This document shows, in pieces, positions 5,461-36,755 of a stretch of DNA of 64,000 bases. The position numbers and the translations under genes were made by a program. Below the pieces are notes generated by a model, which made no database searches, was not told the origin of the DNA, and saw only the letters and a list, made by a program, of their open reading frames with translations. The stretch is from Iphione sp. A-MEVVRFRX5 (Eukaryota), in assembly GCA_976226885.1 (NCBI GenBank), contig OZ320321.1, forward strand, positions 55,614,001 to 55,678,000. The letters are read 5' to 3'. Every line of letters starts with the position of its first letter. Position 1 is the stretch's first letter.

Positions 5461-5587
5461 CATTACTCGCTAGGTATATCATGTAGAAATTGAACATTAA
5501 CGAACATTTGGGATAAATCTTTATTTTCTCTCACCCGACTTCATGTAAATTTGTTTGATTAAAACGAATATACATTGAATAAAAAGC
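5461..5587 (-). repeat. Split direct repeat B2 (3' terminus of element 1)
   Basis: Identical by eye to 5759-5885 (cattactcgctagg...cattgaataaaaagc). Confidence 0.97.
5520..5525 (-). terminator. Candidate poly(A) signal AATAAA in B2 (second copy in B1 at 5818-5823)
   Basis: tttatt on the plus strand is AATAAA on the element's sense strand, about 60 nt before the element end. Confidence 0.6.
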
Positions 5588-5632
5588 AAATAATTGTAAT
5601 AATAATTTGAGAGTTAGGGCGTGGTGGGGGGG

Positions 5633-5758
5633 CAAATCCAGCAACAGAGTGAGGGCGAGTGCCTGCACGTGTCAACTTTTATAGCCCTGCCAGAGGGAGG
5701 GGGCAAGGTATAATTAGCCACCCTCGCTCGCAATGATTCGCCATATCCATGCCAGCGC
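5633..5758 (-). repeat. Split direct repeat A2 (internal copy of the 5' terminus)
   Basis: Identical by eye to 9949-10074 (caaatccagcaacagag...catgccagcgc). Confidence 0.97.
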
Positions 5759-5885
5759 CATTACTCGCTAGGTATATCATGTAGAAATTGAACATTAACG
5801 AACATTTGGGATAAATCTTTATTTTCTCTCACCCGACTTCATGTAAATTTGTTTGATTAAAACGAATATACATTGAATAAAAAGC
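5759..5885 (-). repeat. Split direct repeat B1 (internal copy of the 3' terminus)
   Basis: Identical to 5461-5587; directly adjoins A2 to form the B|A circle-junction mimic. Confidence 0.97.
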
Positions 5886-5906
5886 CAAGAGGGGCGGGTG
5901 AGAGAA

Positions 5907-6905
5907 CTAGGCATCATGTAAGATTCGAGCTAATAGAGCAGCTACACTTTCTGCCTGAGATGTGTGTACATAACCCTGATAGGCATTGGACGCCCAGTTC
6001 CCAAATGCTTTAATACGGTGTATATCACATCCTTGCTGGTAGGCTAAGGTAGCGCCTGTGCGCCTGATGCTATGTAAAGAATATTGCTCAGGCGACAGAG
6101 ACAAAGTTAAAAGAATGTCTTTGAATTGGGAGCTCAACCACTGTGCTGTGACAGGAACCCGATCTCGAAGATGAACGAGGAGTGGCTGTTGGTGATGAGC
6201 AGTCGGGGTCGCTCGAAGCAGTGCCGCAAAGGCATTGATCACACAGAGTAGAGGGTCGTCCGCAGCCGGCAGACGAAGTACCCTGGACTGGTTGAATCCC
6301 TGCAACGTCTTGGACCATTTTTGCCGCACCCATAGGACGGAGCCTTGCTGTACGAGGTCCCCGCGGGTGAGGTGCCGCGTCGGATCGAATTCCATCGTAG
6401 ACCGCGGGGCGATCTCCGACTGGCGAAACCCTGTATAATAAAGGAGAAGAAAGGCAAAACGGAGGATGACAGCATGCGGCCGCTGGACAGCTCGACGGAG
6501 AAGCTCTTTCAATGTAGACGGCTCCAGCGGAAGTCGCGGCCTGACGACATGGGACTTGGTCCGCCGAACCGCATCCAGGGCAAGGCGAGCTGGACGGCTG
6601 TCAAAGTGGGATGATGAGAGGCCACGATCACGAAGAAACTCTCTGACAGATGAGATGGCGTTGAAGACCGATGCCGGAGACTTCATATATGAAGTCAAGT
6701 ATCGGACATACATGACGGCTTGCAGTACGCTCGGCGCGTCCGGGTCAACGCGAAACCTCCAGCAGAACGCCAAGTAGTTCGCTGCGGCTGCGCGGCGATT
6801 CGCCATGGTCCCCGGGGCGCGCGCTGAAGCCACCAACACGCGCGCGTCACGCACCAGTCGTGCCTCAACGGGATCTGAACAAAGAAAGAAAACACACAGG
6901 CCCAC
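5907..6905 (-). CDS. Tyrosine recombinase (YR) of element 1; coding probably begins at the splice acceptor 6875/6874
   Basis: Catalytic set R (YYTGFRQSEI), K (RQKWSKT), HxxR (YSLHSIRRTGAT), W and Y (FGNWASNAYQGY). The ORF-track start at 6905 is a GTG overlapping the RT stop, and its first 10 codons are a polypyrimidine tract. Confidence 0.95.
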   Translation of the reverse strand: MGLCVFFLCSDPVEARLVRDARVLVASARAPGTMANRRAAAANYLAFCWRFRVDPDAPSVLQAVMYVRYLTSYMKSPASVFNAISSVREFLRDRGLSSSHFDSRPARLALDAVRRTKSHVVRPRLPLEPSTLKELLRRAVQRPHAVILRFAFLLLYYTGFRQSEIAPRSTMEFDPTRHLTRGDLVQQGSVLWVRQKWSKTLQGFNQSRVLRLPAADDPLLCVINAFAALLRATPTAHHQQPLLVHLRDRVPVTAQWLSSQFKDILLTLSLSPEQYSLHSIRRTGATLAYQQGCDIHRIKAFGNWASNAYQGYVHTSQAESVAALLARILHDA

Positions 6906-8959
6906 TAAATGTCAGGCCACAAGTCACCAAAGTCAGGGTCAACGTTACTCAGGGAATCTGCTCTGATGAAGTCACCGGCTACGTAAGGGTACTTGGCATG
7001 AGTGTGCCAACGCGAGAGCGCATCAGCAAATGTCATCCTTTCGCCAGGGACGTGCTGATAGCTGATCTCCACACCCACACGGGCCTGGTGTAGCCACAAT
7101 GCCCGAGCACAAGCAAGCAACACTGGGTCACGGCCACGTCCCGTAGTGAAAACTTGCACGGCCGCTTGGTTGTCACACTGCACCACCACTACCTTGCCAG
7201 CCTCTTCCTCAGAGACAAATGTTCTCACCGCCACCATAACGTTCACTGCCTCGAGCTGTGTGATATGCATCCCGTCCAACTCAGGAGGCCGTGCCACGGC
7301 ATAGAAGGCTACATCATCTGCAGCCCCCAGTCCCTCAAGACACGCGTCAGCCATGATTACCTTAGCCACAGCCCTGTCCCCGATGATCGATGTCCCATTC
7401 CAGTCGCTAAGGAACCTACTAAACCATTCGAGGTCCCGCTTCGCCTCACGTCTCAGACGGAAGTGGCGCCCCTTTCCTGCCCGCAGCAGCTCCAACATCC
7501 TACTGACGAAGAGCCGTGCTGGCCGGACACACCTCGAGACATACAGGAGTTTACCTATAATGCTTTGCAGCTCCTTCTTCACGATGGTGCGACGCCCAAT
7601 CAGCTGATTCACGTCTCGCAGTATCTCTGCCACCTTCTGCTCGGGGACAGATATCGTCATTCCGTTTGTGTCGACAGTAACACCCAGCCACACGACACAG
7701 CGTGAGGGTGCCTGGGTCTTGTCCGTCGCCTCGGGCAGGCCCAACTCCTTGAACAGCTGCCTGGCACGATGAAATGCCTCGACCGCCGCCTGGAATCCAC
7801 AAGCAACAACTACCAAATCATCAAGGTACATGTAGCCCGTTATGCCTTCATTGCCCAGGATCCACACAAGTGCGTCCGCCAAGCGCTGCATATGGTTCGA
7901 GGAACACCTCGAACCAAATGGTATGCTTGTGTCCAGGTAGTACTTATTGTCCCAGTGAAATAGGAGCAGGGGCCAATCGAGGGGGCAGACAGGCAGGTTT
8001 TTATACGCTCTAGCCACATCCAATGTGAATAAGTGAGCCTCATGTCCCACCCCCCTAACCCTCGCCAAAAGTGCGTCAATGGTGGGCAAGGAATGGTCTC
8101 TTACAGTGCCTAAAACCATGTTCTTGGCCACAAATGCATTGACCGATGTCGCAGGGGGGTGGGACATATCTGTTATAATCCGTCTGGCATCAGAGTCTCT
8201 CTTCGGTCTCGTCATTAGAGGAGATGAGTGGCACCATTCGACAAACGGTGGTCTTTCAAACGGGCCCTTGAGTGAACCTGCAAGTGTTTCTTTCTGTATA
8301 TATGCGGCGACATGCTGTGGGAATTGAATTGCAGAGGGATGATTGGGCTGATCTATGTTCTCAGATGTAGGGCCAAGGTAGCCTAGTGGGAACCCATATG
8401 TGATAAGATCAACTATCTGTTGATCATGGTAGTTCCTGGCCAGATATGAACGCCATGCTTTAATATTCAAGGCTGATGTTATAGGAATTTTCGCACCTAC
8501 CACATTCGGGTTGCCATTCTCCTTCACCCTGCAGTAACATTCGACCATGTCGTATGGCAGAACCGTTCCATCTGGGGTAGGCCATTCCTTTCGTCGGTGA
8601 GCTGCGAGTGACTGTAAATCTGCAACACCTGTGAAATCAGGGTGATCCTGGGCACATTGATGGCGTATACAATCAAAGTCAAGGTTAACCTTACCGTGGT
8701 CATCGTTCCCATTATCGCAGCCAGGCAAGCATAAGTTGACCTCACCCAAAGGAGAGGTCGCCTTGCTGGCTGCCCTCAATCGTTTTTTGCTGCTGGCTGT
8801 TGCGTCTGCCGCGTGACTTGAGTAGCCGGTGTCTGCTTCTGTTGGGGGGGCTGAACCTGGGCAGGTGGGCGCTGAAAGGCAGTGTACTTTGACTTTTTTG
8901 AACAGACGGAATTGGAATGGCTGTGGCGGGCACCTGTGGCTGCGTGACAAAAAGCACAT
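6905..8959 (-). CDS. Reverse transcriptase + RNase H of element 1
   Basis: RT motifs FTLDVARAYKNLPV, SIPFGSRCSS, YMYLDDLVV. RNase H D-E-D-D: IMADACLEG, ITQLEAVN, VQCDNQAAV, TFADALSR. 684 codons uninterrupted; no protease or DDE integrase. Confidence 0.97.
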   Translation of the reverse strand: MCFLSRSHRCPPQPFQFRLFKKVKVHCLSAPTCPGSAPPTEADTGYSSHAADATASSKKRLRAASKATSPLGEVNLCLPGCDNGNDDHGKVNLDFDCIRHQCAQDHPDFTGVADLQSLAAHRRKEWPTPDGTVLPYDMVECYCRVKENGNPNVVGAKIPITSALNIKAWRSYLARNYHDQQIVDLITYGFPLGYLGPTSENIDQPNHPSAIQFPQHVAAYIQKETLAGSLKGPFERPPFVEWCHSSPLMTRPKRDSDARRIITDMSHPPATSVNAFVAKNMVLGTVRDHSLPTIDALLARVRGVGHEAHLFTLDVARAYKNLPVCPLDWPLLLFHWDNKYYLDTSIPFGSRCSSNHMQRLADALVWILGNEGITGYMYLDDLVVVACGFQAAVEAFHRARQLFKELGLPEATDKTQAPSRCVVWLGVTVDTNGMTISVPEQKVAEILRDVNQLIGRRTIVKKELQSIIGKLLYVSRCVRPARLFVSRMLELLRAGKGRHFRLRREAKRDLEWFSRFLSDWNGTSIIGDRAVAKVIMADACLEGLGAADDVAFYAVARPPELDGMHITQLEAVNVMVAVRTFVSEEEAGKVVVVQCDNQAAVQVFTTGRGRDPVLLACARALWLHQARVGVEISYQHVPGERMTFADALSRWHTHAKYPYVAGDFIRADSLSNVDPDFGDLWPDI

Positions 8960-9942
8960 ACATGTACAAGCTTAACAGAACCCTCCATATGGGAGTCCTG
9001 CTTTACTGAACATGCTCCTACACTATAGTTCGGACACACTGTCTCCATTTGACCCTGCTGTGATTCAACAGGGGCCATGCTCAAACGCAACCTTTCATAT
9101 GCAATTACATTCTGGTCTCTCCAAGATATTTCATTCCGCTCCAACATATCGAATACAGTATTTGACCACTTCCTCACGTTCTTCCAGGGCCGGTGTTGGG
9201 CGTCCTGGGCGACCCTGTGAAGGTGGTCCAACAGGTAGGGGCGGTCATGCGGGGAGACGGACCTCTCGTCTCGTAACATGGCTAAGTAAGCAGTAACAAA
9301 TTCATTAAATGTCATGTTCTCCCTACACTCACTACGGTCTTTGGTGGAGGTACAGCCCTCCCTATCAAGATACATATGAGGGCGGGGAAGAATGTTGCGA
9401 ATTCTATGGTCAAAATTACCTCGTGGTGGTGGAGCCGAGAGCCATGGCGCCGTGGCGTCGATGTAGGAGTCTATATATTGCTGGACGGCCGGGCCCTGTC
9501 TGAGATTCGCAGGGTCTGGGAATGGTGGCGGCGTGCTGGCATGGACTCCCGCCGGTGCAGAATACTGTGCATTGTATGTGTGTACTGACGGGAACAGAGG
9601 AGGTGCTTGGGAGAACTGGACCACCGTCGATGGTATAGTCGAAGCAGCCGCTGTGGTAATGTGCCCCTGTGACTGCACGGTGACCGGTGGCGTGGTGCCC
9701 GTTGTAGTCCCAGCGCTGACTGAAGCCTGAAAAACATTAGAGAAATCCATGAAATGGGTCTTCAGTTCTGCTAACTCTGTCACCGCTCTCTCCAATTTGT
9801 CGAGCCGGTCGACAACCCTTGGTTTCTTCTGACGTGCAGGGGTGTTCTCAGCCAAGTCAATATCAAGACCTGAGCCCTCATTCTGCGTTGTGTCTTCCTC
9901 GTGCGAGGCTGCCCCGCCATTCGGAACTTTCTTCGGTCCCAT
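8776..9942 (-). CDS. Gag-like ORF1 of element 1
   Basis: ATG at 9942 (MGPKK...) lies just downstream of A1 and the Inr. It has an N-terminal coiled-coil-like segment (VVDRLDKLERAVTELAELK), a core MTFNEFV...W..VRKWSNTVFD..ISW matching element 2 gag, and a C-terminal Cys/His cluster (CPNYSVGAC...H...HVCAFCH...HSH...C). Confidence 0.88.
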   Translation of the reverse strand: MGPKKVPNGGAASHEEDTTQNEGSGLDIDLAENTPARQKKPRVVDRLDKLERAVTELAELKTHFMDFSNVFQASVSAGTTTGTTPPVTVQSQGHITTAAASTIPSTVVQFSQAPPLFPSVHTYNAQYSAPAGVHASTPPPFPDPANLRQGPAVQQYIDSYIDATAPWLSAPPPRGNFDHRIRNILPRPHMYLDREGCTSTKDRSECRENMTFNEFVTAYLAMLRDERSVSPHDRPYLLDHLHRVAQDAQHRPWKNVRKWSNTVFDMLERNEISWRDQNVIAYERLRLSMAPVESQQGQMETVCPNYSVGACSVKQDSHMEGSVKLVHVCAFCHAATGARHSHSNSVCSKKSKYTAFQRPPAQVQPPQQKQTPATQVTRQTQQPAAKND

Positions 9943-9959
9943 TTCGTCCAAATCCAGCA

Positions 9960-10000
9960 ACAGAGTGAGGGCGAGTGCCTGCACGTGTCAACTTTTATAG
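9960..10000 (-). promoter_or_regulatory. Pol II core promoter in repeat A1: TATAAAAG (9999-9992) and Inr CCTCACTCT (A+1 at 9966)
   Basis: The TATA box lies 33 nt upstream of a YYANWYY match, 24 nt before the gag ATG. The same Inr 9-mer and similar spacing occur in element 2. The promoter is duplicated in A2 (5683-5676, 5650). Confidence 0.7.
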
Positions 10001-11184
10001 CCCTGCCAGAGGGAGGGGGCAAGGTATAATTAGCCACCCTCGCTCGCAATGATTCGCCATATCCATGCCAGCGCAATTATATGGAATGGTGTTACACTAA
10101 TATTAATTTGTTTCAGAGATTAGACCGACGTGTTTGACAGTATAAATGACAGGCTTTTCGGAAATAAGCTTGAAAATAGAGAACCTTAGTACATGGATAT
10201 CTGCCGAGATAAATAAATAAAATCCAGCGCAGGAAATACACCATGACTACCATCTACATCGCATAAGTTTCGGTTCTATAAGGGGGTCTGCTTGGTGCAC
10301 TGCCGTCAATTTAAGAGTTCTCTTTTGTAATCATGTTTAACAACAGTAAATTACAGTAATTACTTCATGAGAAACGAGTAAAATGTCTGTGATAGTGTTA
10401 TACAGGTAGTTGGATTTGCAGAATTACACGAAGCTGAAACTACGTTGTACTTACTTCAATCTTTAAATGTGACTTTTTATCAATGAATATATCAAGTAAG
10501 CTAGTGCTATCAAATTTCGGAAACTATTGTGCTTAAACAGTGCGAGTTGAAATGTTAGTGAGGGTGGTACTATAATCAATAAACTGGCAAATGAGAAATA
10601 CGAGCAGCCATTTAACTTTTCAACCATTAAAATCTCGAATTCAATTCCCCATGAAATAAGTGACCGTTGACCAAAATCATTTAAATTCGAGAGGTATCTG
10701 AAGCGGCATCTAATGGGAAAAATAAATTCTGCAAATTGGAAAGTATTATGAAAGGTCACGTGGTAGACTCCGATTTGATCAAGCATGGCATTTGAGGACC
10801 TACTTAACACGCTTTCGTCATGGTTTTCACGGCGTCAGTCATTAAGCAACAGAATAGTATTGCAACTACTGTTTAAATACGCAGTCGTGCTGAACCCAAC
10901 TTGAGAATAATCAGGGCTAACGGCAATGCCAGAATTTAATTTTGTTAAAGATATAGTTTATGTTTACTCCTATTTATATCCTACCTACTAAAATTTGTGC
11001 GACTTAACACTAGACTTATCTGAGTTGCCATTGTACTTTCTTAACAAGGCATATTCTTTCCATATATATGTGATAGATACAGCATGAGTAGAGCATTGGA
11101 CGCGATATATTACTGTATAATATTCGAGGCGCAGTCAAGAACATTATACAGTGATATATCAAGTACATGCTCTACATGTATCTC

Positions 11185-11360
11185 NNNNNNNNNNNNNNNN
11201 NNNNNNNNNNNNNNNNNNNNNNNNNNNNNNNNNNNNNNNNNNNNNNNNNNNNNNNNNNNNNNNNNNNNNNNNNNNNNNNNNNNNNNNNNNNNNNNNNNNN
11301 NNNNNNNNNNNNNNNNNNNNNNNNNNNNNNNNNNNNNNNNNNNNNNNNNNNNNNNNNNNT
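11185..11360. other. Assembly gap (176 N)
   Basis: Run of n characters, followed by a (TC)n-rich tract. Confidence 1.
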
Positions 11361-11374
11361 ATTTTTGTGGAACT

Positions 11375-11427
11375 CTCTCTGTGTCTCTTCTGTCCCTCCC
11401 TCTCTCTGTCTCCCTCTCTCTCTCTCT
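11375..11427. repeat. (TC)n-rich microsatellite
   Basis: ctctctctgtgtctcttctgtccctccctctctctg...tctctctc. Confidence 0.85.
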
Positions 11428-14392
11428 TTAATTAAAGGTTTAATTGTCAGTTTTTTCTGTGGATTCATGGTAAAAATACCGTGAGTCGGCATAAAAAAAT
11501 GTCATTTTTACCGCGAATCCACGTATCATGCTGATATAACACCATGTGGTTACGAGGTGTCCTCTACAGTAGTTTTCTACGGGTTTATGGACCGTGAAGC
11601 ATTATACCCATACGTGAACATGTATCATGTTAGGTTTGTCATTTTTTCTGTGGATTTGCAGTAAATTACGCAGTAAAGTGATGTTGTTTTTACCACGAGT
11701 GTAAATAACGTCATTTCATTACAAATGACGCATTTCGGCGATCTGTATACATGTACTTGATACATGTCAGAGATCACTACGTGCCTCTGTATAGTCATTT
11801 ATGATCTATAATCATTCACAAGCAGCAGCTCAATATGTACGATATTACCACATTTTGCTAAATAGGCGCATAGAGCATTAAAGATGGCAGCCGTGCTTTA
11901 AAGGTATATACATGTACATGTATGTGTTACTTTTATTCCAACCTGTTATTACTTCATGCAACAAAATCGGGATTTGTATTGCAAATGGCATATTACAATA
12001 TTGAAATTAGATTTATGGAAATTACATTTCATTCGATAATTGCTAAAATACTGGTGTAATTTGTTGATGGAATTCAACAGTGAACAGACTTGATTTACGA
12101 TCGCTTTTCACGTGGCACTATGTGACATTCGGCGCTGTGTGGAAGACACGGGTTCTGGTGAAACAATTAATCAGGACTCAGGACCTGCATCTGAGACCGG
12201 TGTATCACCGTTAGAAAATTGGTCCCACTCGGCAATCTGTTAATTTGGGTTCCAATTCCTCTTAGGTCCATCTCACATTCTGTGTTGCTGTCAATTAGGG
12301 TGTTCCTTCATAGCTCAGTTCTTTCGAATTTGATGGATATTCTCGAATTTAACTGTACCTTGTCACAACATAGCTTAGACACTGATTTTATTGTTGGCTA
12401 ACACTATATGTACTGTATTTTTAATCAATTCAAACCTAGACTCCCCTAGGAGTTTAACAGCGGTTTTAAATGGATGCCTTTCTATGTAGTCTTTCGAAAA
12501 ACTGCCTAAGAATTTCCATGTTCCTCACGTACATGTATATGATATACTAAAGATTACATAAATACATAACCTATATATATATATATATTCGTTCTCATGA
12601 CACCTAGGAACTCCGATATACCAAGGAAAAGACCGAGGCAACGCACTTCTCGATCTATTAGCAAGTACAAGTACTCATGACGATTGCTCAGAGGGGTACA
12701 GATGTATATAGTTTAACATGAGTGAACTCGACATCGATGTCGACGTTTCTTTGAGGAGTGGCCAGCAATCCTCCACAGCTTGATGTGAAGGGCGTACTTA
12801 TAACCGTGGCGTAATAACAGGATTAACAGCAGAGGAGGCAGGTTGGTGTGGCCTCAAAGAAACTTAAGACACGATATGAGGTTATGGAGGTCGTCTGGCA
12901 CATGAATATCAGCAGCAACTAGGTTTTATTCGGCCTAACGATCCCGAGCCTGGGATAGCACGGAGACCATTTCCCCGAAGGATTCTTAGCGCATGGCTTG
13001 CTGTCGTTTCCATTAGCTGTAGCTGCGCCCGCGGTCCGCCCAAGTCGCTGGTATAAAGAATTGTCGGGTGACGTGGCAGTGCGCATAGGGAAAGCTCATC
13101 TGGGGATAGGTAGGCAGCCCATTTCCCCGCTTGTCCGCCTCCAATGCCCATGTACGGCTCACCGTGCTTTCCCAGTTGTCCCACTGCCGGCTGTGGTAAT
13201 CTCTATACCTCTGCCTCTCTCATCCAGCCACCCACCCTCCCACCCATCTCCTCCTTCGCCGCCATCATCTAACGCCACTATATCTAGTGCACCCATACAA
13301 GTAAACACCCCCGAATTGACATCTCCAAATAGCGATCCAAAGTGTAAGGAGCCCACTTTCACGAGAGGCATATTCCTACCCCCGTTCTTTAGGTTTACCC
13401 ATGAAGTAGTGAGTTTCGAGTCCTCCTACACACATGCATCGCTATAAAAGTGAAGACTGGAGGCGGCGCGGCGGCGGTATCTTGAGGCGACGGTCTAAAT
13501 CCACGGGCCAAGTGTGCACCCATTCACAGCTTTCACTTCTTAAAATGAGGGACCGGACCGAGTCCTTTAATACAAGTGGAATGAGCTCCTCTCCGGGCAG
13601 AAAACCTGAGGACACATCGCACTGTAACCAGACAGGCCATTTCATGTTTAAAACGACTATGGAAGTAAACAGACGAAGACCGTGAGCACATGATAAAAAA
13701 GCAGGCTTCCCACTCGATGGTATCTGACCATAATTATTTTGATTTGAACTGTAACTTAGCTTTCTTTCCTTTGGTCCTTCTACCAGAAAACAATGGTTCG
13801 TTATGATAAGTCATGTGGGTTGCATAATTCACTGCCATGGTCATCATCTTTAAGAGATAATACTATATTTTATACGTATTTATTTGCGTGGATTCCTATT
13901 GTTAATGTGTCTTTTGAACCGCAACCGATCTAGCGTTGTTCCAAGGCCCTTGCTGTGAACTCTACACAAGCATAAAGTGCCAGCGTCCCTGCTTTTAGTA
14001 CAGCCTACTCGTATCCTGGTCTCACACAAGTAACTTTTGTGATAATTAAAATTCTACACTCTGTCAATTCCACAGGATTTTATTACTTTGTAAATCACAA
14101 TCAATAAATTGGTTAACGTGTCCCCAGTTACTGGAAAATGTCATTATTGGAAGGATGGATACCAATCTGGCTGGGGTAAAGTGGAGATGAAGCAATTTAA
14201 CGTAATCACTTGTGGCTTCCAGATGACAACATTACGAATACTCTGATTAGGTTTATGAGCAGGTGTGACACTTACAGTCTACTCTAGTATCTACTCGTGT
14301 CGATAATTCTTAATTGAATGTTCCCACGAGAAATTCCACAATTACATGTATATGATATACATGTACATTAAAAGGGAGCTGCACAGACATTA

Positions 14393-27011: not shown

Positions 27012-27152
27012 GTCCGTTAACCAGATGACGCTGGCTTCGAATTTAACCATTTTTGGGGGGGTCAAATGGCTTTCTGGGTAATTTCCATACATTTTACAGT
27101 AATCTACACGTTACAACTTGCATATTATAGTGAAGGACCCCTGGAATATATT
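27012..27152 (+). repeat. 141-bp direct repeat, left copy (putative B-type repeat)
   Basis: Identical by eye to 31042-31182 (gtccgttaaccagatgacg...ctggaatatatt). Confidence 0.97.
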
Positions 27153-27219
27153 GGGATATTACAGACGAAGTCGGTAATGCTTTATCGTCGCAACAGAGGG
27201 CGCCACGCTGGGCCCTGGC

Positions 27220-27260
27220 TATATATAGACGGGGCTACTACCTTACCGGGCCTCACTCTC
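27220..27260 (+). promoter_or_regulatory. Pol II core promoter of element 2: TATATATAG (27220-27228) and Inr CCTCACTCT (A+1 at 27255)
   Basis: TATA-to-Inr spacing is 33-35 nt; the Inr 9-mer is identical to element 1; gag ATG at 27322. Confidence 0.7.
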
Positions 27261-27321
27261 GTCGTGGCGCCCAGTTGCTGTTGTTGCCATTTGCTGAACG
27301 TACGACACGTACCACTGAGAA

Positions 27322-28233
27322 ATGGACGAGGAAATTGCAAAGAAATTCACCGAGCTTACTGACCTAATGGCGACAATGGTACAGCGCATTCAGAGCCTCG
27401 AAGAAAAGAAAGACGTGGACGTCGTGACAAGGTCGAAATCTAAGGCAGCCAAGAAGGACCCTCAACCTTCCACCTCCAAGGGCGCCGGTAACGATTCTGA
27501 GGTCACCTCTCAGCAGGACGCGGACCAAACAGACGACGACGAGGACTCCCCACCACCGGCCATGCTTAGGAAGGAAGGCGAACAATTATCTGACAGGCTC
27601 CTCACTGCAATTTACCCTCAGAAATTGCAAACAAAAGGTAAGGTGAAAATTATATCACCTGTTGACCACATTAGACTACCGGCTGCAGCTAACAAAGACA
27701 TTTCGAGCATGACTTTTCAACAATATGTCACAGCTGTCTTGTACATGGCATATCATCCGAGCCTCCCGTCTGATATAACTACTGAGAATTTGGTAGCACA
27801 TGTGAGGGAGGTCGCCCAGGAGCATATTGGTACCCCATGGCCACCACTGCGTAACTGGGCGGCTGAACTATGGCATGCTTACAATAATAAGCAATTCAAG
27901 TGGGGGGACGTTATGCTAGCCCAGCAGACAAAGCTTAGGGCAGCACTCGAGTTCCTCTCTTCACATCAGGATGAATATCTCCCCAAACCAAAGACTAACT
28001 GTGTTATATGTCCCAGTTGGGTGAGTGGCAAGTGTGAAGCACAGCACCCCAAGAATGAAGGCGTATATGATGTATTGCATTGTTGTCCAATCTGCTATTA
28101 CATCCACAATAAGCATCTTGACCATAGGTCCGACCAGTGCAGAATGAGAAGGAAGCTTGCAGGACAGCCCAAGCCCGACGACAGGCGCCCTGACAACCAG
28201 CAGCAGAGGCGCCGACAGGACGACTGGCAATAG
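27322..28233 (+). CDS. Gag-like ORF1 of element 2
   Basis: 303 aa; N-terminal coiled-coil-like segment (KKFTELTDLMATMVQRIQSLEEKK), core MTFQQYV...HVREVAQE..TPWPPLRNWAAELW..FKWGD, and a Cys/His cluster (CPSWVSGKC...HCCPICY..H..H..H...C). Confidence 0.88.
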   Translation: MDEEIAKKFTELTDLMATMVQRIQSLEEKKDVDVVTRSKSKAAKKDPQPSTSKGAGNDSEVTSQQDADQTDDDEDSPPPAMLRKEGEQLSDRLLTAIYPQKLQTKGKVKIISPVDHIRLPAAANKDISSMTFQQYVTAVLYMAYHPSLPSDITTENLVAHVREVAQEHIGTPWPPLRNWAAELWHAYNNKQFKWGDVMLAQQTKLRAALEFLSSHQDEYLPKPKTNCVICPSWVSGKCEAQHPKNEGVYDVLHCCPICYYIHNKHLDHRSDQCRMRRKLAGQPKPDDRRPDNQQQRRRQDDWQ

Positions 28234-30031
28234 GCAACTCGACTTCGATCCAGACGTCCCACTCACCTACGCACCCCAAGCCTCTGCACCATACACACCT
28301 TTCCAACCAGATTTCGACCGCGACGTCCCACTGAGAATCATCAAGTGGCCAAGGTCAACACACGCAGACCCAGTACTACAGACGTATGACAAAGTCAGGG
28401 CCACAGGAAGGCCCAATGTCCTCGAAGCCAGGACCCCCCTGGCATCGAACATTAATTTCTTTAACATTGTTAAAATCTTTGATGTCTCTTCTAATTTTGA
28501 CGCATTTATGTATGACTGTATCATATATGGCTTCCCCCTCGGTTACGTAGGCGCAAACCTGAACCCGGATGAAATTGACAATTATTTTTCAGCCACACAG
28601 CATGAAGAGCATGTCCAGGCCTACCTGGACAAAGAGCTTAGTCACTCCTCTATCGCAGGCCCATATGATTCTCCTCCCTTCTCCCCATGGTTCATACAGA
28701 GCCCAATGATGACACGCCCAAAGACAATCAATGAGAGGAGGGTCATAGTCGACCTGTCAGCTAACGGAGTTAATCAAAACATCCCATACGGTTCCTATTT
28801 CCACACACCATTCAGCATATCCCTCCCTTCCCCTCTTGACCTCATACGAAGTATTAATGAATTTTCCTCCCCACTGGTATGGACAATCGATTTGAGTAGG
28901 GCCTACAGGCAGTTCAGAATAGACCCCCTCGACTGGCCCCTACTTATTATTAAATGGAAGGGCAAGTACTATTTTGATCGCAGTCTCCCCTTTGGGACTA
29001 GGTTTTCCTCAGCCTTTCTCCAGAACATATCCGACAGAGTTAAAATTTACCTTACTAACCTCTACCCTAACCTGCGGGCTTTAGTATATCTCGACGATTT
29101 TGTTTTCGTCTCTGAAACACAACACGCTCAGCATATTTTTCAAGACATCCTCAATATATTTAAGGAATTCGGCCTGGAGCTCGCCCCCAAGAAGATAGTT
29201 CCCCCATGCAGAGAGTTTACATGGTTAGGGGTTCAATTCAATTTAACTGCCAACACAATGGCTATCCCTGAAGAAAAAATCCAAAAGCTGCTAACAATGA
29301 CACGATATCTTGTATATAGGAAAAAATGTACCTTCAAGAAGGCTCAGCAACTACTTGGGTTAATCAATCATGTCTCCAAGTGCCTTCTTCATTCCAGGTT
29401 GTTTGTAGCTAGGATCCTCAATCAGATGAGGCATGACCAAGCCCAAGGCAGTCCCCATCTCAAGATAACCGACCAGGTGAAGAAGGACCTTTATTGGTTT
29501 AACAAAATCCTCCCGGATTACTCAGGGATCTCCTATATTCCCAACAATGCCCCCCCTAGGATAGAGGTTCACTGTGACGCCTCCCTTTATGGGTTAGGCG
29601 CCTACTCGTCTTCGCTGATGTATGCAATGCCCATTCCACCAGCCCTAGCTGAGTGCAGCATGGCTCAGCTCGAAGGGGTTAACCTGGCCCTGGCCGTCAG
29701 GGCTCTTACCTCTAACCCCTCACATAAACCCATTAACATTACGGTTTACTGTGATAACCAGTCGGCTGTAGCGGCCTTCACATCGGGTAGGGCCCAAGAT
29801 AAGTTCTTACAGGCTAGCGCCAGGGCTTTGTGGCAGCACCAAGCTACTAATCATATCTTTATTCAATTTGTACATAAGCCAGGAGCCCAGATGATAGTGG
29901 CAGACGCCCTCTCGAGACTCGGTACTGAATCGAAATTTAGGGCTATATACAATTCATTCAGGAAAAGACACCCATGGATGCGCAGAGTATTCCCATCCCA
30001 TCAGCAGGTTAATACGATCCTACAATCTTGA
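28157..30031 (+). CDS. Reverse transcriptase + RNase H of element 2; coding probably begins at the splice acceptor 28310/28311
   Basis: WTIDLSRAYRQFRI, SLPFGTRFSS, LVYLDDFVF; RNase H VHCDAS, AQLEGVN, VYCDNQSAV, IVADALSR. The track start is TTG, and the first ATG (28508) is codon 118, downstream of the conserved WP...Y..V...G.PN motif. Confidence 0.96.
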   Translation: MQDSPSPTTGALTTSSRGADRTTGNRQLDFDPDVPLTYAPQASAPYTPFQPDFDRDVPLRIIKWPRSTHADPVLQTYDKVRATGRPNVLEARTPLASNINFFNIVKIFDVSSNFDAFMYDCIIYGFPLGYVGANLNPDEIDNYFSATQHEEHVQAYLDKELSHSSIAGPYDSPPFSPWFIQSPMMTRPKTINERRVIVDLSANGVNQNIPYGSYFHTPFSISLPSPLDLIRSINEFSSPLVWTIDLSRAYRQFRIDPLDWPLLIIKWKGKYYFDRSLPFGTRFSSAFLQNISDRVKIYLTNLYPNLRALVYLDDFVFVSETQHAQHIFQDILNIFKEFGLELAPKKIVPPCREFTWLGVQFNLTANTMAIPEEKIQKLLTMTRYLVYRKKCTFKKAQQLLGLINHVSKCLLHSRLFVARILNQMRHDQAQGSPHLKITDQVKKDLYWFNKILPDYSGISYIPNNAPPRIEVHCDASLYGLGAYSSSLMYAMPIPPALAECSMAQLEGVNLALAVRALTSNPSHKPINITVYCDNQSAVAAFTSGRAQDKFLQASARALWQHQATNHIFIQFVHKPGAQMIVADALSRLGTESKFRAIYNSFRKRHPWMRRVFPSHQQVNTILQS

Positions 30032-30996
30032 TTCCAGACCCCCGCCTCAGCAATCTTGCCATATCTGCGGCCAAGAGACAGGTCCAGGCTGTTACAGAGG
30101 ACACATTCAAGTCGCGCGTACGAATGCTCTCTCTCTTCATAGGATTCTGCAAACACTACCAGATAGACCATCAGGCCCTTGAGGTAGAAGAAGTCCTAGT
30201 TTATATAGAGTATCTGGTTTTGCACTTCACCCCCGTGGTAGTCTCACAAAACATTTCCGCAGTGAGGCATTTCTTCCCAAAAGGCTCTGTACCAGGTGAC
30301 TCACTTACCCATGCCAAGGTATCTCATGCTCTCAAGTCAGTGCAAAAGAACGCTAACCATATAGTCGACAGAAAGCTTCCTATTACTCCGGATATACTGT
30401 TTGATTTAGTTAGCCTTCTCAGCTCCCAGGGCCTCCTGGGCATTACCTTCAAGGCCATTTTCTTGTTTTTATTTTTCTCCCTGCTAAGGCAATCGAACTT
30501 ATTCAGTAGGCTGAATAAACCATTTGACCAGCAGAAACAGCTCCTTAGGAAGGATGTCCGTATTCTCCCCGACCACATTGAGGTTAAGGTCAAGTGGTCG
30601 AAGACAATTGCTGCTTCTTCCCCAAAGAAGATCTTCCTCCCTAACCTGAAGGGTTCCCCTCTTTGCCCCCACCATGCCCTCTCCGACCTGATCAACCACC
30701 AGCCCACGAGGAACCCCCTCCAACCCCTTTTTGCCTGCCCAGTGACCCAGCTACCCTTCACATCTGAAGCAGTTTCCAAAGTCCTCCTAGAGCTTTTAAG
30801 TGAGTCGGGTCACAATCCAAGGGCTTACTCGTTGCATAGTTTCAGAAGGGGGGGGGCCACAGCCCTGCAGGCATTGGGCGCCTCCCCTGAGGAGATCCGC
30901 GCCCAAGGTACATGGGCATCTACCTCCTCGTACCTAACCTACACTAGCGACGCCCTGAGATCCCTGGGCGCCGCCAACAAATTTACAAGCATTTAA
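30028..30996 (+). CDS. Tyrosine recombinase (YR) of element 2; coding probably begins at the splice acceptor 30037/30038
   Basis: R (FSLLRQSNL), K (KVKWSKT), HxxR (YSLHSFRRGGAT), W/Y (QGTWASTSSYLTY). The track start is a TTG overlapping the RT stop. Confidence 0.95.
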   Translation: MIPDPRLSNLAISAAKRQVQAVTEDTFKSRVRMLSLFIGFCKHYQIDHQALEVEEVLVYIEYLVLHFTPVVVSQNISAVRHFFPKGSVPGDSLTHAKVSHALKSVQKNANHIVDRKLPITPDILFDLVSLLSSQGLLGITFKAIFLFLFFSLLRQSNLFSRLNKPFDQQKQLLRKDVRILPDHIEVKVKWSKTIAASSPKKIFLPNLKGSPLCPHHALSDLINHQPTRNPLQPLFACPVTQLPFTSEAVSKVLLELLSESGHNPRAYSLHSFRRGGATALQALGASPEEIRAQGTWASTSSYLTYTSDALRSLGAANKFTSI

Positions 30997-31041
30997 ATTT
31001 CCTTCTCTCTCTGGCTATTGGCGTATTGGCGCCCAGGGATC

Positions 31042-31182
31042 GTCCGTTAACCAGATGACGCTGGCTTCGAATTTAACCATTTTTGGGGGGGTCAAATGGC
31101 TTTCTGGGTAATTTCCATACATTTTACAGTAATCTACACGTTACAACTTGCATATTATAGTGAAGGACCCCTGGAATATATT
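31042..31182 (+). repeat. 141-bp direct repeat, right copy
   Basis: Identical to 27012-27152. Confidence 0.97.
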
Positions 31183-35801: not shown

Positions 35802-36755
35802 ATGTTCATCAAGAAATCATATTCAGACTGTATCAATCTAGGGGTCGGTGTACCACAGGGCAGTATCCTCGGCCCTACCCTATTTAGTATCTTTATTAAT
35901 GATAGTATTAAACATCTAAAGCACTGTCACTGTGTATTATATGCAGACGACACAGTATTATTATTCAGACATAAGAATCTGCAGAAAATCGAAGAATCAT
36001 TATCAAAAGATCTTCTATTGTTGAATGAATGGTGTGAGACAAATGGTATTACCATAAATGAACAAAAAACAGAATTAATGCTAATATGTACCACACGGAA
36101 TATGAACAGGGACTCAGTTTTGAATGTTGTCTTGAATGATTTTGTAATCAAACAGGTGCCAGTATTTAAGTATTTAGGCCTATGTATTGATCGCCACCTA
36201 ACATTTGAATATGAATTACAAAGTAAATTAAACAAGTCATATAGCCAATTAAATCTACTGCGCCATGTTAGATCAATCTCAGATGAGAAGACTGCCATGC
36301 TAATTCTAAAAACTTACTTTCTACCAAATATCGAATACTGCATTGGATCTATACACTGCTACAAATCATACAGCTTCGTAAGATTAGAAAAGCAGCTAAT
36401 AAAAGCAATAAAGATAGTCACCAGATACAAGCTGAGCAGGATTGAAGACATCATGATAAGATACTCAATTCTCCCTTTGGAATTTAGAAGTACTTACTAT
36501 TCCCTATGTAATAGCTATGAAGACCTGTCCCCCCAATACTGCAACTTACTAAAAGAAAACAATAGACGAAATCCATGTATTCCTTGTACTAGACCCAAAA
36601 TCACTTTGTATAAATACAGTCCAAAGTATTTCTCTATTAGGAGTTGGAATAGTCTGGAAAGTCAAATAAAAACACTACCAAAGGTTAAGTTTAAGAAGAG
36701 AGTGAAGAGCACATTGCTCAATAAACTTTCAAAGGATAATTGGAGAGTCCCATGA
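35802..36755 (+). pseudogene. Truncated LINE ORF2 (RT domain from motif 4 to the C-terminus), 317 codons uninterrupted
   Basis: ORF track; lacks the endonuclease and N-terminal RT. The first few codons may be flanking DNA. Confidence 0.88.

Follow-up and report, generated by a model that had tools for sequence, protein, structure and literature searches.

Splice sites conserved among Ngaro-type retrotransposons probably fuse a Gag leader to a tyrosine recombinase that has no start codon

Introduction

Ngaro retrotransposons belong to the DIRS order and were reportedly described by Goodwin and Poulter in 2004. To our knowledge, expression of the recombinase has never been shown experimentally in DIRS/Ngaro elements, for which a -1 frameshift is the standing proposal. 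In avian sarcoma/leukosis virus (ASLV), splicing joins the gag AUG and the first six gag codons in frame to env. Foamy virus Pol is translated from its own AUG on its own spliced subgenomic mRNA, with no Gag-Pol fusion, and spliced mRNAs also serve gag of Drosophila copia and env of gypsy/ZAM among the long terminal repeat (LTR) retrotransposons.

Here, we analyse a retrotransposon, named element 2, that encodes a tyrosine recombinase (YR) downstream of gag and of a reverse transcriptase/RNase H (RT/RH) open reading frame (ORF). It lies in a window of 64,000 nucleotides from Iphione sp. A-MEVVRFRX5 (contig OZ320321.1, positions 55,614,001 to 55,678,000, forward strand), and the coordinates given for the window count from its first letter. 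We compare it with a second element of the same window (element 1) and with relatives from other genomes and metagenomes. We consider it likely that a conserved intron joins the first 105 gag codons in frame to the start-less YR, which would be made from a spliced subgenomic mRNA.

Results

Putative splice sites of element 2

Consensus splice sites in element 2, both in phase 1, would join the YR in frame to the gag start (Table 1; a slash marks the border between exon and intron, or between the joined exons). A sequence-only reading that preceded this analysis had proposed the donor AAAG/GTAAGG, and direct inspection agrees with it: the exon ends at G27637 in phase 1 and the border splits the GGT codon of Gly106. 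The acceptor proposed there, TTGATTCCAG/ACCCC, holds as well, with its AG at 30036-30037, the intron ending at 30037 and the exon running from A30038 in phase 1 (codon 30037-30039, GAC). It does overlap the RT stop, whose TGA at 30029-30031 falls within the 3' splice region, and the suggested branch site, GTTAAT at 30008-30013, fits yUnAy with its A at 30012, 25 nt 5' of the AG. Joining Gag residues 1-105 to the YR yields, as had been claimed, 424 aa with no internal stop and the junction ...PQKLQTK-D-PRLSNL.

With an approximate 5' splice site weight matrix, the donor ranks first of the 168 GT sites of element 2 (11.25 bits, with a runner-up at 8.55). The acceptor core reads TTCCAG/AC and lies 25 nt downstream of position 30013, where the YR frame opens after the TAA at 30010-30012. 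The first 105 residues of Gag form the leader, while the conserved core and a zinc-knuckle-like Cys/His region lie 3' of the donor. A search of the window with up to 3 mismatches found no intron-less copy of the junction of element 2.

A recombinase without a start codon

No ATG occurs in the 8 codons between the opening of the YR frame and the acceptor, and the first Met of the YR is residue 29. An AlphaFold (AF2) model of the YR built with 19 homologues (predicted local distance difference test score, pLDDT, 84.8) has helix 1 span residues 2-18 and helix 2 residues 21-40. Given that helix 1 starts at residue 2, exon 2 would begin at a domain boundary. Met29 falls inside helix 2, and a protein started there would lack helix 1 and half of helix 2. 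The top match of the model in the PDB is Cre recombinase, over its full length (template modelling score, TM, 0.66). In an alignment of 19 sequences, the catalytic residues R151, H267 and R270 are invariant and Y301 is nearly so. The model thus presents exon 2 as encoding a complete two-domain recombinase.

For the leader of element 2, a single-sequence AF2 prediction gives a helix at residues 3-35, a disordered segment at 36-79 that is first basic and then acidic, and a second helix at 80-97. The leaders of relatives are likewise rich in heptad-like and basic segments. We infer that the leader may provide the recombinase with an oligomerisation, particle-targeting or nuclear-import module shared with Gag.

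The same arrangement in element 1

Element 1 carries a comparable pair of sites. Its joined ORF is 496 aa long, with the junction ...PPPR-D-PVEAR; its acceptor scores first of 272 AG sites and its donor is the best within gag. The two YR moieties measure 319 aa (element 2) and 322 aa (element 1), and CAG/AYCCC encodes Asp-Pro at both acceptors, both as first described. The elements have no meaningful nucleotide identity to each other, again in agreement with the earlier reading, and their proteins share 25% identity in the gag core, 37% in RT and 28% in YR.

The two donors had also been called homologous in position. Both do lie just 5' of the conserved gag core, but they are offset by ~4 residues: gag homology in BLASTP begins at residue 180 of element 1 and 107 of element 2, and the donors stand at 175 and 106, respectively. 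When more families are aligned over gag, their donors also fall in this unconserved linker, at variable distances.

Two-exon gene models in relatives

Homology searches with each YR returned no relative above 45% identity for either element. The YR of element 1 gave one match only (43%), without gene models, and that of element 2 retrieved distant relatives at 27-38% identity, a few of which have N-terminal extensions of 120-230 aa. We mapped the exons of four RefSeq models, from two scallop and two amphioxus genomes. In all four, exon 1 consists of the first 121-173 gag codons and its end splits a Gly codon in phase 1, at the donors ACAG/GTGAGA, TCAG/GTATGC, CAAG/GTGAGA and AAAG/GTAAGC. Their introns of 2.2-3.1 kb (2,204-3,097 nt) hold the gag core and the whole RT/RH ORF, as in element 2, and exon 2 is the YR, preceded by a clear pyrimidine tract. 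The scallop acceptor, ...tttacttgatttgcag/ATCCC, also encodes Asp-Pro. Moreover, a profile search listed further leader-plus-YR proteins, by name, in three Branchiostoma species and in the hemichordates Glandiceps and Ptychodera.

A different chain was seen at an amphioxus locus of the P0148 element family, in another assembly (L089, 3001-7609; NCBI GCA_025402995.1), where a 1,366-aa model links gag, RT and YR, the end of RT being joined through a short intron to the same YR acceptor as in P0148. This junction reflects an alternative donor, or else an artefact of the modelling.

Conservation of phase across loci

With the YR alignment as query, 80 loci were retrieved from metagenome contigs. 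From these loci, the two elements of the window and fetched loci we obtained 74 intact YR ORFs, and the best-scoring acceptor was sought within -75 to +45 nt of each YR start, with windows inside the YR ORF as control. This acceptor was in phase 1 in 63 of the 74 ORFs, against 37% in the control (binomial p = 3e-17), and in 59 of 70 after the removal of duplicate contexts. Most loci share a common layout of RT stop (often TGG-TAA), pyrimidine tract, YAG and YR. The distance from frame opening to acceptor has a median of 37 nt, and this interval is ATG-free in 44 of 60 cases.

The residue in the column of the YR start varies (D, G, A, V or E), whereas its codon is nearly always GNN following NCA or NTA. 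A varying residue with a fixed GNN and AG indicates that the constraint acts on the nucleotides, that is on the AG, and not on the protein. At the other border, among the elements with complete gag, RT and YR, the top-scoring gag donor is in phase 1 in 12 of 13; it stands at 0.34-0.54 of the gag length and always in the unconserved linker 5' of the core. Related elements therefore keep the phase-1 donor before the gag core and the phase-1 AG at the YR start. As to whether the acceptor is universal in this clade, the AG and its phase proved to be conserved; Asp-Pro is frequent but not universal.

Crypton DNA transposons were considered as a source of the metagenome loci and were ruled out. At least 600 nt of sequence preceded the YR in 61 loci, and in 59 of them RT/RH homology lies upstream of the YR on the same strand; such loci are therefore retrotransposons.

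A copy that has lost the intron

In the ENA assembly ERZ25767047, a copy named L004 carries a contiguous ORF of 545 aa (P0004) in which an N-terminal part of Gag is followed directly by YR (GagN-YR). Its first 224 residues are 98% identical to the 412-aa gag of a full-length element of the same assembly, L007. At the DNA level, the two match at 98-99% on either side of a 2,844-nt gap, for which a single placement has GT...AG ends (L007 7674-10517). The donor thus defined, GGAG/GTAAGA, is in phase 1 at Gly225, is the top-scoring one in L007 gag and falls in the same column of the gag alignment as the donors of elements 1 and 2. Asp-Pro codons recur at the acceptor, ...gattttctgtgattcag/ATCCT, which again overlaps with the RT stop.

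L004 retains split direct repeats. When a transposed copy lacks precisely an intron, reverse transcription of a spliced RNA is the classic explanation. With its exact loss of the intron and its terminal repeats kept, L004 thus looks like a retro-copied spliced RNA. At the level of sequence, the comparison shows that a relative of elements 1 and 2 has made use of these sites in vivo.

Points that weigh against splicing

Several points have to be set against this interpretation. For element 2 itself, we infer splicing of its RNA from sequence. Its acceptor is tied at ranks 5-11 of 281 AG sites with a crude pyrimidine score, and its pyrimidine tract is interrupted (12 of 17). The frequencies in the donor weight matrix are approximate, and the acceptor score was devised ad hoc. 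Among strong GT sites in RT ORFs, 45-50% are in phase 1 too, which makes for a weak donor control, so that 12 of 13 on its own gives p ~0.002. Moreover, the metagenome loci are not phylogenetically independent, and the RefSeq models are computational and may spread between species via protein alignments. Finally, the relatives P0173, P0138 and P0162 carry RT/RH and YR in one frame, so that splicing is not the sole route in the wider group. P0172 likewise has RNase H and YR in one continuous ORF; all four are distant relatives.

Alternative routes to the recombinase

The GT and AG of element 2 could be fortuitous or unused, with the YR produced from an internal or non-AUG start on a separate transcript, from Met29, or supplied in trans. 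GT and AG are indeed common in element 2 (168 and 281, respectively) and the score of its acceptor is not outstanding, but chance leaves unexplained why a phase-matched pair is present again in element 1 and in another 11 divergent elements, and why the phase of the acceptor is conserved in 85% of the 74 loci. A start at Met29 would truncate a confidently modelled domain, and the identical 141-nt repeats and intact ORFs of element 2 mark a young and probably autonomous copy. We regard this explanation as unlikely.

According to Poulter and Butler (2015), in the part quoted in PMC13003380, the YR of Ngaro elements is reached by a -1 frameshift in the overlap of RT and YR. Programmed frameshifting of this kind would give a Gag-RT-YR or an RT-YR polyprotein. 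The geometry of element 2 would allow it, since its YR frame lies at -1 with respect to RT/RH and stays open over a stretch of 19 nt up to the RT stop, and the same frame relation was found in 24 of the 38 loci with a definable RT end. However, the other 14 of the 38 are +1, so that the frame relation is not conserved, and in 9 of the 38 the YR frame opens only after the RT stop, so that no frameshift can link RT and YR there. The overlap of element 2 (30013-30031; TACGATCCTACAATCTTGA, 19 nt) has no X_XXY_YYZ slippery heptamer. Frameshifting also leaves unexplained the phase-1 AG with its pyrimidine tract, the phase-1 gag donor and the intron-less L004. These features argue against a frameshift as the general mechanism between RT and YR, and we consider it quite improbable.

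Recoding signals are plain at the junctions of gag and RT. In element 1, A_AAA_AAC is found in the gag frame at 8776-8790 of the window (minus strand), 3 nt (codon GAT) before the gag stop, with RT/RH in -1. The same heptamer occurs at the gag end of the -1 relatives L007 (8225-8239) and L017 (near 1490-1503), and it has the appearance of a conserved frameshift site between gag and RT. In relatives with gag and RT/RH in one frame, a lone TGA with CTAG directly after it stands between the two (L001 7189-7195, L019 1871-1877, L084 1106-1112). TGA-CTAG is a known context of stop-codon readthrough; amphioxus L006 has TAG-CAA instead. Recoding signals are therefore readily seen where the elements use them, and the RT/YR junction has none.

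Element 2, in which RT is +1 relative to gag, showed no gag-to-RT frameshift signal. A 29-nt imperfect repeat at 28235-28332 (copies at 28235-28263 and 28304-28332) encodes DFDPDVPL and DFDRDVPL, and each copy has a CCAG/A in phase 1 for RT, so that exons would start at 28254 and 28311, respectively. With these sites at the start of RT, the gag donor of element 2 could also yield a GagN-RT/RH fusion. L030, the sole other relative with a +1 relation between gag and RT, has phase-1 acceptors at the RT start; in the -1 and in-frame relatives the phases are mixed.

Spliced-leader trans-splicing at the acceptor was ruled out, given that the YR has no AUG after the acceptor and that phase is conserved on both sides. 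Lastly, that the tract and AG between RT and YR are kept for replication, as a priming or recombination site, with the gene models and the deleted copy being coincidental, is very improbable: retroelements do keep purine or pyrimidine tracts as primers and the tract lies in a non-coding or overlap spacer, but a priming tract needs neither a fixed YR codon phase nor a matching phase-1 consensus donor in gag, this tract is not adjacent to the terminal repeats, and the L004 deletion ends precisely at GT and AG.

Layout of the elements and their surroundings

Element 2 is a Ngaro-type element, as indicated by its gene order, by its R...H-x-x-R...Y residues and by the fact that no methyltransferase domain was detected after RNase H, a domain whose lack sets Ngaro apart from DIRS1-like elements. 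Its RT ORF matches Pfam RVT_1 (E=1.3e-11), the sole domain found in these 624 aa, and stops directly after the RNase H-like DNQSAV...ADALSR region. Both 141-nt repeats being identical and all three ORFs intact, element 2 is a young and probably autonomous copy. A TATA box precedes gag and is probably an RNA polymerase II promoter; its counterpart in element 1, CTATAAAAG, has a comparable spacing to its own ATG.

The termini of the two elements differ. In element 2, the upstream repeat ends 170 nt before the ATG and 5' of the TATA box, whereas A1 of element 1 adjoins the ATG and contains the TATA box. One 141-nt pair was seen in element 2, and a search with seed 10 found no second (split) pair. 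The termini may be arranged differently in element 2, or the copy may be incomplete or permuted.

Elsewhere in the window, a 317-aa ORF at 35802-36755 encodes the C-terminal part of an RVT_1 domain (E=1.1e-17) and is, judged by this match, a fragment of another retroelement. A search of the whole window against Rfam returned no matches.

Table 1. Coordinates of the features of elements 1 and 2 (positions in the window) and of the relatives discussed in the text
Feature	Position	Strand	Remarks
Element 2	27012-31182	+	Intact tyrosine-recombinase retrotransposon; order gag, RT/RNase H, YR
Direct repeat, upstream copy, 141 nt	27012-27152	+	100% identical to 31042-31182
Direct repeat, downstream copy, 141 nt	31042-31182	+	
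TATATATA box (TATA), probable promoter	27220-27227	+	~95 nt 5' of gag ATG
gag ORF, 303 aa	27322-28233	+	ATG at 27322
RT/RNase H ORF, 624 aa	28157-30031	+	TGA stop 30029-30031; +1 frame relative to gag
YR ORF as listed	30028-30996	+	Phage_integrase, E=1.3e-3
Coding part of proposed exon 1	27322-27637	+	316 nt: gag codons 1-105 and first base of codon 106
Putative 5' splice site AAG/GTAAGG	27635-27643	+	GTAAGG 27638-27643; phase 1
Proposed intron, 2,400 nt	27638-30037	+	GT...AG; holds gag core and entire RT/RH ORF
Putative 3' splice region	30008-30037	+	Candidate branch site, pyrimidine-rich tract over RT stop, CAG
Proposed exon 2	30038-30996	+	Complete YR, 319 aa including junction Asp, and stop
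Predicted junction of element 2		+	AAACAAAAG/ACCCCCGCC; also as TTGCAAACAAAAG/ACCCCCGCCTCAGC
Element 1, canonical Ngaro	5461-10079	-	
Element 1 split direct repeats	A1 10079-9949, B1 5888-5759, A2 5763-5633, B2 5590-5461	-	
Element 1 ORFs	gag 9942-8779, RT/RH 8959-6908, YR 6875-5910	-	
Element 1 putative donor CGAG/GTAATT	exon ends 9420	-	Phase 1, Gly175
Element 1 putative acceptor ...ttttctttctttgttcag/ATCCC	exon starts 6874	-	
Predicted junction of element 1		-	CCACCACGAG/ATCCCGTTGAGG
L007, full-length element	gag 7001-8239, RT 8470-10512, YR 10493-11482		ERZ25767047
P0078	Mizuhopecten yessoensis LOC110460989		RefSeq two-exon model; three identical loci
P0100	Pecten maximus LOC117318630		RefSeq two-exon model
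P0110	Branchiostoma lanceolatum 'xerD homolog'		RefSeq two-exon model
P0148	XP_078682739.1, Branchiostoma hybrid		RefSeq two-exon model

Discussion

In the mechanism that we propose, the full-length transcript of element 2 would serve both as genomic RNA and as mRNA for Gag, with RT/RH obtained via recoding or a second splice. A fraction of the transcripts would be spliced from 27637/27638 to 30037/30038 and would thereby drop the gag core together with the complete RT/RH. This subgenomic mRNA, of ~1.6-1.7 kb, would be translated from the gag AUG into the 424-aa fusion of the 105-aa Gag leader and the complete two-domain Cre-like recombinase. Splicing would thus let a 3'-proximal ORF without its own start codon be translated.

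We think it somewhat probable that the arrangement extends across Metazoa (molluscs, cephalochordates, hemichordates and many unplaced marine eukaryotes), with Ngaro-type YR made only as a spliced Gag-leader fusion, the leader tying YR to Gag assemblies or nuclear import, and the spliced RNA also being reverse-transcribed and integrated, which would seed non-autonomous GagN-YR elements like L004.

If true, the frameshift model would have to give way for an entire order of retroelements, and the conserved splice between Gag leader and YR would reveal a retrovirus-like subgenomic mRNA strategy in DIRS/Ngaro elements. It predicts a specific fusion protein of ~47 kDa and would explain the many two-exon models named 'uncharacterized protein' or 'xerD homolog' in invertebrate RefSeq, as well as the short non-autonomous elements that carry a GagN-YR ORF alone. 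The junction sequences would make the activity of such elements measurable in RNA-seq data. The finding also bears on transposable element annotation pipelines that treat YR as an ORF without a start codon.

Comparison with known systems

In the full-text literature that we searched, together with papers on these elements, native splicing in DIRS/Ngaro elements is undescribed, although an earlier mention is possible. Elements 1 and 2 resemble Ngaro in the order of gag, RT/RNase H and YR, with no methyltransferase domain detected, and in their Cre-like YR with R, H-x-x-R and Y; element 1 in addition has the canonical split repeats A1...B1-A2-B2. They differ in how YR would be expressed, the published -1 frameshift from RT/RH, in the account as quoted, being replaced here by a spliced Gag-leader-YR mRNA. 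In element 2, moreover, one repeat pair was seen and not the split arrangement.

The closest likeness in expression is to ASLV env, with a 5' splice site inside gag and a 3' site before an AUG-less gene that borrows the gag start and N-terminal residues. The leader is here 105-225 residues long with predicted helices, compared with six codons in ASLV, and the downstream gene encodes an integration enzyme and not an envelope protein, in an element that is not an LTR retroelement. As in foamy viruses, the gene of an integration-related enzyme would be expressed from a spliced mRNA and not by recoding; unlike there, RT/RH stays in the intron and only the recombinase is spliced on, fused to a Gag leader. 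Finally, host splicing would set the ratio of products as it does in copia and gypsy/ZAM, but in another class of element and for other genes.

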